Part shown: positions 30,101-64,000 of the stretch, one piece after another
Layout of the letters: each line of letters begins with the position of its first letter
How positions within the stretch are numbered: the stretch's first letter is position 1
Sequence record: OQ031493.1
Strand: one strand, 5' to 3'
Length of the DNA: 64,000 nt
Notes under the pieces: model-generated
The model's database searches: none
The model's input: only the letters and a program-made list of their open reading frames with translations
What the model was told of the DNA's origin: nothing
Position numbers and translations under genes: made by a program

Positions 30101-30139
30101 GACAAAATAAAGCCCTCCCCGAAGGGAGGGCAATATGTC
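30101..30139. terminator. GCCCTCCC-family hairpin after the collagen fibre gene
   Basis: AAGCCCTCCC-CGAA-GGGAGGGCAATATGTC. Confidence 0.75.
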
Positions 30140-36842: not shown

Positions 36843-37376
36843 TTAACTTTCTAGATAACGGATTTGACCATTTTCTAGATAACGTGCTGCACCATTCTCT
36901 AATAGTCGGATAGTATCTGACGTATCATCAATACGTTGGATTAGTATATTACATTCACCATAGTAAGCATAGCTACTCGACATAGCTACTATCGTGTATG
37001 GAACAACATCCGTAGTTGCATTGATTGGTGTTGTATCAAATGAAACATCATCTGGACCAAGCTTCCAACCTCGTGAACGGTTAATTTCTTCAGCAATTGC
37101 TTTAGGTGTTAAAGTACCAACTATCTTAAGGATAGATCCTTCACCAATAGCACGTGGATCAGCAAAATCTAACCGACGGTAAGTTAACATGTACTTAATG
37201 TCAGTAGTGATGTCGATCATTTCAATAAATGTACGTCCAGGCTCAATCGTGGTTGGACTAAAAAACATATCTTCAAATGTAACTGTTTCTGGTTTGAAGT
37301 TTATTTTTAAATCATCCCGCGCAAGTTTTACTAGCGCATTCCTCGATGCCATGTCATACGGAAAGATATCCTGCAT
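36843..37376 (-). CDS. gp143: Virion-type protein with C-terminal triple RxLENG repeat
   Basis: YRRLDF paralog-family domain; ends IRLLENGAARYLENGQIRYLES. Confidence 0.75.
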   Translation of the reverse strand: MQDIFPYDMASRNALVKLARDDLKINFKPETVTFEDMFFSPTTIEPGRTFIEMIDITTDIKYMLTYRRLDFADPRAIGEGSILKIVGTLTPKAIAEEINRSRGWKLGPDDVSFDTTPINATTDVVPYTIVAMSSSYAYYGECNILIQRIDDTSDTIRLLENGAARYLENGQIRYLES

Positions 37377-62398: not shown

Positions 62399-62433
62399 TG
62401 TAATATAGATCTTAAACTTTTTTTAATGTAATA
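62399..62433 (-). promoter_or_regulatory. phiKZ-type early promoter
   Basis: Minus strand TATTACATTAAAAAAAGTTTAAGATCTATATTACAG; near-identical to 10691-10726. Confidence 0.8.
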
Positions 62434-62434
62434 C

Positions 62435-62470
62435 AACATAAAGCCCTCCCCGAAGGGAGGGCCTATGTCT
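62435..62470 (-). terminator. GCCCTCCC-family hairpin closing the capsid transcript
   Basis: AACATAAAGCCCTCCC-CGAA-GGGAGGGCCTATGTC; begins 4 nt after the TAG at 62475. Confidence 0.8.
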
Positions 62471-62474
62471 GTTA

Positions 62475-62552
62475 CTATTCTAACTTCCGGGCATTACCGT
62501 CTTCCAAATAACGGATAGTCCCATTTTCTAGATAACGGTAACCCTTTCCAGC
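62475..62552 (-). CDS. Putative readthrough extension of the major capsid protein (25 aa)
   Basis: In frame after TGA: AGKGYRYLENGTIRYLEDGNARKLE-TAG; same repeat as the gp143 C-terminus. Confidence 0.6.
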   Translation of the reverse strand, partial: AGKGYRYLENGTIRYLEDGNARKLE

Positions 62553-64000
62553 TCACGGCTTAAGATCAGCAAGCTTACCGTTGAACTGAGTTTCACCCAT
62601 GACTTTCTGGAAGCCAGTGATCTTGAACTCTAGCGCGAACGGAATGTTGTTGACGTGTAGGTTGAACGGAATGGCCGCGATTTCGCGAGTAACCTGGTGA
62701 CCACCACGAGTGATCGGTAGGTCAGCGATAACAGTAGATACGTAGAAGAACTGACCCCAGGAGAGGATGTCGTTTTCTTGTTGTACTGCGCGGGTCGGAA
62801 TTACAACTAGCTTACCATCAAATAGCTGGTTGTTGGTGGAAACGATATCGTACTTGAGATAAGCACCTAGAGTACGGTCGTCACCTTTAGTCATTAGATA
62901 GTTAGCAATCTCTTTGTCGGAGCAGAAGAGATACATCGGAGTTTCATCCTGGTTACCGGAGATAACACGGAAGGCAGCTTCAATGTTGGAATCACGGTGA
63001 GCCGGGAATAGCTCAGCTTTAACACAGTTTAGGATCGCAGCGCAAACGTCGTCCCAACGATCTTTAGACTTGATGGTGTCGATGACTTTCTCAAGATCTA
63101 GTTCTTTGTAACGATAGGTCGGACGCATTACAGCGGATAGTGCACCTTCGATGATACCAAACTTCGGACGGTTGTAACCATTGTGTACAACTTCACGTAG
63201 TTGAGCAAGGTAGTTAAGCATGCGCTTAACAGCGTTGTTGCTGTTACGGATGTTGGTGTTAACAGTTAGAGCTTTAACAACCTCACCCGGACCTTCATCG
63301 GTCATGGTGTCCATCGGTAGAGTTACAGGAGCGTGCATCGGGATCGGATGACGGAACTGTAGCGCACGGGTCTGTAGTAGGTGACCACGCTGACGACGGT
63401 TAGTGTTGGTGAAGCGAGTGTCTAGTTCGAAACCGATAACCGCTAGGTCAGTTAGCTGATCTAGAATAGCTTTAACAGCCGGGTCAGCATTATCCATTAC
63501 CTGACCATCTTCGTTTAGAACTTTATCGACGTAAGTGTCGGTAGCACCAAACTTAGAATCGCCTTTGGATAGGCTGATTGTACCACCAAAACCAACGCTT
63601 AGACGTAGGCTTAGTTTAGCAGTCTTAAGGTCGTTAATAACGCCATCAGCTGAACCGTCGATGAAAGTGGTATCGCCACTAACAACAAGGTCATCGCTAT
63701 CGAAACGGATAACTGCGTTCCGGGTATCACCAACTAGATCGGGCTGGAACACAGCGCGAGGTAGACGGTCAACCTTGAACTTAACAACTTTACCGCCGAG
63801 TAGAACGAATAGGTTCTTTAGACGACCAGCCGGATCAATGGTGTCAGAAACTTCAAGCATGCCACGCTGAATGAGTAGGTTAGCATTGGAGTTACCCATT
63901 AGATCAAGACGTACGTTCGCTTTTAGCGGAGCAGTAGTGATAGTTAGGTTCTGCTCGTTCTTGATGGTGTACGGAGGAACAAGAGCCGGGTCTACGAAGA
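62553..64000 (-). CDS. gp120: Major capsid protein (3' part; frame open to the window end)
   Basis: Strong high-expression codon bias (AAC, TTC, ATC, CTA); position upstream of gp121-123; the track's Met at 63899 is internal. Confidence 0.88.
   Translation of the reverse strand, partial: FVDPALVPPYTIKNEQNLTITTAPLKANVRLDLMGNSNANLLIQRGMLEVSDTIDPAGRLKNLFVLLGGKVVKFKVDRLPRAVFQPDLVGDTRNAVIRFDSDDLVVSGDTTFIDGSADGVINDLKTAKLSLRLSVGFGGTISLSKGDSKFGATDTYVDKVLNEDGQVMDNADPAVKAILDQLTDLAVIGFELDTRFTNTNRRQRGHLLQTRALQFRHPIPMHAPVTLPMDTMTDEGPGEVVKALTVNTNIRNSNNAVKRMLNYLAQLREVVHNGYNRPKFGIIEGALSAVMRPTYRYKELDLEKVIDTIKSKDRWDDVCAAILNCVKAELFPAHRDSNIEAAFRVISGNQDETPMYLFCSDKEIANYLMTKGDDRTLGAYLKYDIVSTNNQLFDGKLVVIPTRAVQQENDILSWGQFFYVSTVIADLPITRGGHQVTREIAAIPFNLHVNNIPFALEFKITGFQKVMGETQFNGKLADLKP

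Follow-up and report, generated by a model that had tools for sequence, protein, structure and literature searches.

A stable hairpin eight nucleotides past the capsid UGA of phiKZ-type phages: a probably selected RNA structure with a tentative role in stop-codon readthrough

The major capsid gene of a phiKZ-type phage ends in a UGA codon, beyond which the reading frame stays open and the mRNA is predicted to fold into a long hairpin. The question raised by this locus is whether the hairpin is a selected RNA structure and whether it acts on the decoding of the UGA. It was addressed on a 64 000 nt stretch of sequence record OQ031493.1, referred to below as the window, to which all coordinates apply unless a locus is named. 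The 1.65 kb around the hairpin were 99–100 % identical to Pseudomonas phage phiKZ, a model jumbo phage, and to its close relatives (PA7, KTN4 and others); judged by this identity, the source of the window is a phiKZ-type Pseudomonas jumbo phage. The minus strand carries, in this order, the 3′ part of gp120 (major capsid protein), gp121, gp122 and further genes. The product of gp120 was matched to the PHROG major head protein (E 3e-174); its reading frame extends past the window end at 64000 and, by sequence and PHROG match, closes with the UGA at 62553..62555 (minus strand). In the near-atomic capsid structure published in 2024, gp120 was modelled only to residue 747, and its C-terminal arms sit at the capsomer centres (PMC11297242). 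No description of a readthrough form of gp120 was found in a literature search.

Folding was carried out by using RNAfold, which predicted a 56 nt mRNA hairpin at 62489..62544 (minus strand), separated from the UGA by a spacer of 8 nt (GCUGGAAA; 62545..62552, minus strand). The outer stem of 11 bp (62544..62534 with 62501..62495 and 62492..62489) leads into a middle helix of 6 bp (62532..62527 with 62508..62503), an apical helix of 5 bp (62525..62521 with 62514..62510) and a loop of 6 nt (62520..62515), all on the minus strand. The hairpin had been pointed out in a sequence-only reading of the window, which gave its position and strand (62544..62489, minus strand), its 8 nt offset after the capsid UGA and its length of about 56 nt correctly. 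The three helices, which had been paired by eye, were recovered by RNAfold; the 2 nt bulge was not as described, since it consists of AU, with a U-G pair, and not of UG. The RNAfold check proposed there returned a stable fold: the MFE was −24.7 kcal/mol, compared with a mean of −11.1 (sd 2.5) for dinucleotide shuffles (z −5.39), and none of 200 shuffles was as stable. When folded in a context of 201 nt that included the terminator, the hairpin was unchanged in both the MFE and the centroid structure, and about 24 nt of AU-rich sequence between hairpin and terminator were unpaired. The antisense strand gave −13.3 kcal/mol (z −1.9); the hairpin is strand-specific because several of its pairs are G-U. 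A pseudoknot between the loop (ACUAU) and a downstream AUAGU, paired by eye, was dropped, as most phiKZ isolates carry GAG for UAG, which breaks the pairing; no conserved pseudoknot partner for the hairpin was found. A dispersed repeat or REP-like palindrome was also rejected: the sole similar stretch in the 64 kb window is the 3′ end of gp143.

RNA-seq data were used in the form of assembled contigs. Contigs from two runs traverse the hairpin and stop at 62435, where one is fused to adapter sequence; because they continue through to this position, the hairpin lies within the capsid mRNA. The 3′ end of this mRNA is an intrinsic terminator at 62435..62464 (minus strand; terminator scan and RNA-seq contigs), with a GC-rich 10 bp stem-loop and a U-rich CUUUAUG tail. 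As an intrinsic terminator in its own right the candidate hairpin was rejected: it is without a U tract, transcripts pass through it, and the scan called only the next hairpin (62464..62441). The motif CUUUAUG(C/U)CGU after the terminator stem is conserved in all phiKZ-like relatives and even in the distant chimalliviruses RSL2, Goslar, Ea35-70 and LucasX; it is probably the common terminator motif that an ONT-cappable-seq study described in phiKZ and 201phi2-1 (PMC11512511). A near-identical 30 nt copy of the terminator lies at 30102–30131 of the window. About 25 nt past the terminator, upstream of gp121, the promoter-like sequence ATCTATATTAC (62400–62410, minus strand) is conserved in most relatives and is probably a phage-polymerase promoter for gp121.

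The hairpin is contained in an in-frame extension of the capsid gene, a tail of 25 codons (AGKGYRYLENGTIRYLEDGNARKLE) followed by a UAG stop (62475..62552, minus strand), with an open frame and a conserved peptide. The tail peptide is made of RxLE[DN]G repeats, and the pattern xGKGxxRxLEDGxxRYLEDGxxRxLE is kept in 27 distinct relatives. The combination of a capsid UGA with an open tail of 24–30 codons and the same pattern (RxxEDG) was found in 11 of 11 cultured phiKZ-like Pseudomonas lineages (including Phikzvirus, Pawinskivirus, PhiPA3, Phabio, 201phi2-1, RVTF4, Psa21, D6 and Noxifer); UGA and tail were also present in 21 of 23 IMG/VR loci and in 4 of 9 metagenome loci. The capsid stop is UGA in every tail-bearing relative, and the capsid gene ends in UAA in all seven tail-less loci. 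The latter are from uncultured relatives (L061, L065/L066, L030, L033, L063 and L064); L061 and L065 are close kin of tail-bearing lineages, so that the tail disappeared on several occasions, and every loss went along with a change of the capsid stop to UAA. In L061, the last few codons of the former tail (…CCTAGAGTAG) remain after the deletion, and the losses are therefore recent as well as repeated. Tail-less lineages have short 3′ UTRs without a large hairpin. The distant chimalliviruses Ea35-70, LucasX, pVa-21 and RSL2 have UAA and no tail.

The stop codon of the tail itself is UAA, UAG or UGA with no preference. In the window it is UAG (62475–62477, minus strand); phiKZ has GAG-UAA at this place, and its tail is one residue longer. 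Among 47 phiKZ-type records, a 91 nt query that included the hairpin differed at 0–2 bases, and most records differed at one; in phiKZ and the RNA-seq contigs, which were aligned, the differing base is in the tail stop codon, outside the hairpin, and the one-base difference of most of the other records is consistent with the same UAG to GAG change. Variation within the phiKZ species (47 records) is thus uninformative for the hairpin. Two observations on annotation and on a more distant phage belong here. In the GenBank record of phage HPP-Temi, a 47-residue ‘hypothetical protein’ in another frame overlaps the end of the capsid gene and the tail (725–868 of locus L002); it is probably a gene-caller artefact due to the unannotated open stretch. 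The capsid gene of Escherichia phage Goslar (locus L037, 1091–1180) ends in UGA-A, followed by an open frame of 28 codons for an unrelated peptide (TTVAASLDDILDD...), which could be due to chance or could be a second, independent capsid readthrough tail.

Codon comparison between tail and capsid body was used to ask at which level the tail is constrained. At identical residues, codon identity was 0.43 in the tail and 0.69 in the capsid body, and the Arg codons of the tail are CGN or AGR depending on the lineage. As the synonymous sites vary and the residues are kept, it is the peptide that is conserved and not the nucleotide string. Codons that are almost never used in the capsid body make up 249 of 678 tail codons (37 %), compared with 3.2 % in the body; such an excess of rare codons is expected of a stretch that is translated far less than the body. 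The conserved peptide, the variable synonymous sites and the rare codons, taken together, make it very probable that ribosomes reading through the UGA translate the tail at a low level. The sequence-only reading had proposed that the same bases encode both a peptide tag and a structure; this is upheld in so far as the hairpin lies inside an in-frame extension that is under selection at the peptide level.

A conserved peptide of repeats can by itself generate complementary RNA, and the stability of the fold was compared with synonymous controls, the comparison by which the sequence-only reading had wanted its proposal judged. All 1296 synonymous codon permutations of the phiKZ tail were folded; their mean was −21.4 kcal/mol (sd 2.9), and the native order, at −28.3, ranked 20 of 1296, so that 1.5 % of the permutations were as stable and the native order was better than 98.5 % of them. 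Over 25 lineages the mean z was −1.47 by permutation and −1.64 with pooled tail codon usage, compared with −0.28 and −0.49, respectively, for ordinary 81 nt coding windows of the same loci. The native codon order was more stable than the permutations in 24 of the 25 lineages, and after clustering at 80 % identity the excess was retained, with negative z values in 14 of 15 clusters (p = 5e-5 against the background mean). The pairing profile averaged over 15 lineages, with an unpaired spacer (0–11), arms at +12–23 and +60–71 and an open loop near +38, was sharper than that of permuted sequences.

Codon-permutation controls and gene-wide codon-usage controls gave different answers on this tail. 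Recoding of the phiKZ tail with the codon usage of the capsid body gave a mean of −23.4 kcal/mol, and 15 % of the recoded sequences matched the native stability (z −1.09, not significant; median over 25 lineages −0.48). This null is unsuitable because 37 % of the tail codons are rare in the capsid body. The same recoding makes plain that the peptide alone explains much of the stability of the hairpin, and some native codon choices weaken the fold (AAU over AAC, UUG over CUA).

The window holds a natural control for the contribution of the peptide. Gene gp143 (36843..37376, minus strand), just upstream of the endolysin gene gp144, ends in ...IRLLENGAARYLENGQIRYLES, that is, with the RxLENG repeat as its normal C terminus (36843..36914, minus strand; motif scan and ORF list). 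Its product is a DUF7941 protein, a domain that is found at the N termini of tail-fibre-like proteins. According to a preprint cited in bioRxiv 2025.11.23.690004, gp143 is a lysis regulator; it is non-essential by TnSeq. Homologues were collected from the relatives' own records, as a single-protein scan of IMG/VR gave only one locus; in ten relatives they carry the same three-repeat tail at the C terminus. In phiKZ the gp143 and capsid tails share 30 of 36 nt, synonymous choices included; this suggests either that one locus was copied from the other or that the tag has the same partner in both. The gp143 3′ end folds into both inner helices (UCUAGA/UCUAGA and AAUGG/CCGUU) without the outer stem (−17.4 kcal/mol, z −1.5). 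For the gp143 tails the permutation z was −0.51, and the mean MFE was −20.9 compared with −28.6 for the capsid tails. That gp143 builds this inner hairpin from the repeat it shares with the capsid tail identifies the two inner helices as a by-product of the RYLENG codons, with which they come free.

Covariation, which the sequence-only reading had also proposed as a check, was analysed on 11 related sequences that start with xGKG (phiKZ, Pawinskivirus, PhiPA3, Phabio and 201phi2-1-like; group 1), with the structure predicted from the same alignment. RNAalifold retained the outer stem and nothing else, with 11 pairs from 8 nt past the UGA onwards. In this stem, 91.7 % of the cells were paired, compared with 84.4 % in column shuffles (0 of 500 reached the native value) and 44–60 % when the partner was slid by 1–3 columns; compensatory changes were found in four pairs (11 cells; 1 of 500 shuffles). 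In one example, the synonymous third base of a Gly codon in the 3′ arm changes with the 5′-arm base opposite: GGU occurs with A, GGA with U and GGG with C. Elsewhere the capsid gene has neither GGA nor GGG. When 3′ arms were exchanged between lineages, the duplex became less stable (−15.6 kcal/mol, compared with −18.0 for the native arms; P = 0.0036). The outcome was narrower when all 25 distinct sequences were aligned: RNAalifold kept six invariant pairs only, without compensatory change, and the CCG/CGG and GG/CC cores of this consensus derive from Arg and Asp-Gly codons. Other folds are adopted in the RNPG and Noxifer-like clades, and beyond group 1 the apical helix is not retained; the pairing schemes are not homologous across clades, with the first helix 6–9 nt past the stop in all three. 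Covariation was thus observed for the outer stem within group 1 but not in the all-clade consensus. From the permutation excess, the contrast with gp143, the compensatory changes and the arm swap, we conclude that the RNA structure is probably selected, and that the outer stem in particular is probably maintained by selection at the RNA level.

What the structure is selected for, if it is, has to be weighed among several readings. One of them denies it a function: the RxLE[DN]G peptide would be selected, and its self-complementary codons (xxC-CGU/GAC-GGU, CUAG in Leu-Glu, AAUGG/CCGUU) would fold as they must. The inner hairpin of gp143, which forms after no stop codon, agrees with this, as do the 15 % of capsid-usage recodings that reach native stability, the reduction of the all-clade consensus to cores from Arg and Asp-Gly codons, and the native codons that weaken the fold. 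It does not account for native orders that beat their permutations in 24 of 25 lineages, well past background and gp143 tails, or for the compensatory changes and the significant arm-swap effect in the outer stem, and the capsid-usage null on which it leans is inappropriate for a tail so rich in codons rare for gp120; we consider it rather doubtful. Alternatively, the hairpin could be a bacterial SECIS-like element through which host SelB would direct selenocysteine to the UGA. Its placement does resemble such an element: the hairpin lies just 3′ of the UGA within coding sequence, and its apical loop, at a distance of about 32 nt, opens with G in this phage. The likeness is superficial, however: a search with E values up to 10 gave no Rfam family, the first base of the loop falls on the third position of a Gly codon, where close relatives have any of the four bases, the apical helix is not retained beyond group 1, and a major capsid protein is implausible as a selenoprotein. 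With no Rfam hit and no conserved loop this reading was rejected as highly improbable.

More weight is due to the reading that the structure was selected for protection, 3′-end stabilisation or processing of the mRNA and not for decoding. With most ribosomes terminating at the UGA, the AU-rich tail of about 80 nt upstream of the terminator would be almost free of ribosomes, and a fold would shield a very abundant capsid mRNA from endonuclease and from loss of the 3′ hairpin. Protection accounts for the excess stability and the covariation, for pairings that differ between clades, for a fully translated gp143 tail without the excess and for a hairpin that vanishes along with the tail; moreover, the capsid genes of the distant chimalliviruses RSL2 and LucasX, which stop in UAA, carry extra hairpins before the terminator. 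Against it, a strong terminator hairpin already stands downstream, the single strand of about 24 nt between the two structures stays exposed, and the pressure is weakened by Dip, an inhibitor of the RNA degradosome that phiKZ encodes. Nor does protection give a reason, beyond the footprint of a terminating ribosome, for a first helix that starts 6–9 nt past the stop in all three clades. We regard it as a serious but somewhat unlikely explanation; the evidence for selection is as compatible with a protective or stabilising role as with one in decoding.

The reading that we prefer, with a probability of about 40 %, is that selection maintains the hairpin as an mRNA structure, in bases that also encode a short readthrough tail of the capsid protein, and that this structure tunes the decoding of the UGA. 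On this proposal most ribosomes would stop at the gp120 UGA and a minority would decode it, presumably by a near-cognate host tRNA, and would add the 25-residue tail of RxLE[DN]G repeats. A host tRNA is assumed because none that reads UGA is encoded by PA7: in this near-identical genome record no UGA-suppressor tRNA was found among Leu-UAA, Pro-UGG, Met-CAU, Asp-GUC, Asn-GUU (two copies) and Thr-UGU. With a UGA in the A site, the helicase site of the ribosome is about 5 nt past the stop and the mRNA entrance a few nt beyond. The closing stem, 8 nt on, would then be at the entrance, and a stem that begins with the ninth nucleotide fits the placement seen in the dnaX or MuLV signals. Held there, the stem would favour readthrough over release by RF2; it is from this geometry that we infer a change in the readthrough rate. 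The strict link between hairpin, tail and UGA also fits a stimulator. The length of the spacer is not independent evidence for one, because it is set by the conserved xGKG or RNPG codons. The phage is nucleus-forming: its mRNAs are synthesised inside a compartment and have to be exported before translation, and the capsid mRNA could thus fold before the first ribosome arrives.

If the hairpin does tune UGA decoding, structure-assisted readthrough would extend from eukaryotic viruses to bacterial ribosomes, and phage capsids could be made to display a tag in a chosen ratio by means of a compact, portable element. Should protection of the mRNA be its only role, the stretch of 75 nt still offers a clear overlap of protein and RNA constraints. 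SECIS elements aside, no hairpin that stimulates stop-codon readthrough is known to us from bacteria or phages. That this is the first such signal from a phage or bacterium, acting on 70S ribosomes and setting the share of capsid subunits that carry the tag shared with gp143, is put forward tentatively.

Among known systems, the closest in layout are the MuLV gag-pol pseudoknot and the stem-loops of alphaviruses and coltiviruses, in which a leaky stop is followed, after about 8 nt, by a stable structure in the readthrough coding sequence. The capsid locus shares with them a stop codon of the leaky type, the 8 nt spacer and a stable structure inside the coding sequence of the extension. Compared with signals of this kind, it was found to have both a leaky stop with an open, conserved extension and a stable structure about 5–9 nt 3′ of that stop, and the predicted outcome, a fixed minority of C-terminally extended protein, is the same. 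It would differ in acting on bacterial 70S ribosomes with RF2, where the eukaryotic-virus signals act on 80S ribosomes with eRF1, and it is a plain bulged hairpin, unlike the MuLV pseudoknot. The bacterial SECIS element likewise is a hairpin immediately 3′ of an in-frame UGA and within coding sequence; the capsid hairpin has neither a conserved apical-loop signature nor an Rfam match, and its loop varies freely among relatives.

Recoding at the end of phage capsid genes has precedents. The UGA of the Qbeta coat gene is read through at a few percent by a near-cognate host tRNA, yielding the minor extended capsid subunit A1; to our knowledge no stimulatory hairpin is involved and no structure is needed. 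Here, too, a phage capsid gene ends in UGA and a minor extended subunit is predicted, but Qbeta is a ssRNA phage with an extension of about 200 residues that is needed for infectivity, and the tail described here has 25–30 residues and belongs to a dsDNA jumbo phage. In T7 (10A/10B) and in the Listeria phages PSA and A118, a minor, elongated capsid protein arises by frameshifting at the 3′ end of its gene, and for PSA a downstream RNA structure was reportedly proposed as stimulator. The candidate recoding site of phiKZ-type phages is likewise at the very 3′ end of the major capsid gene; those phages use −1 or +1 frameshifts at slippery sites, whereas here the frame is kept and, as predicted, a stop codon is decoded. 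That a simple hairpin about 6 nt downstream of a recoding site can stimulate a bacterial ribosome is known from the −1 frameshift of E. coli dnaX; the geometry is the same as here, and the event differs, as dnaX slips on A-AAA-AAG with the help of an upstream SD-like element and does not decode a stop codon. A hairpin 8 nt past a leaky stop is thus already known from eukaryotic viruses, and recoded, extended capsid proteins are known from phages; what would be new at this locus is structure-assisted readthrough on bacterial ribosomes.
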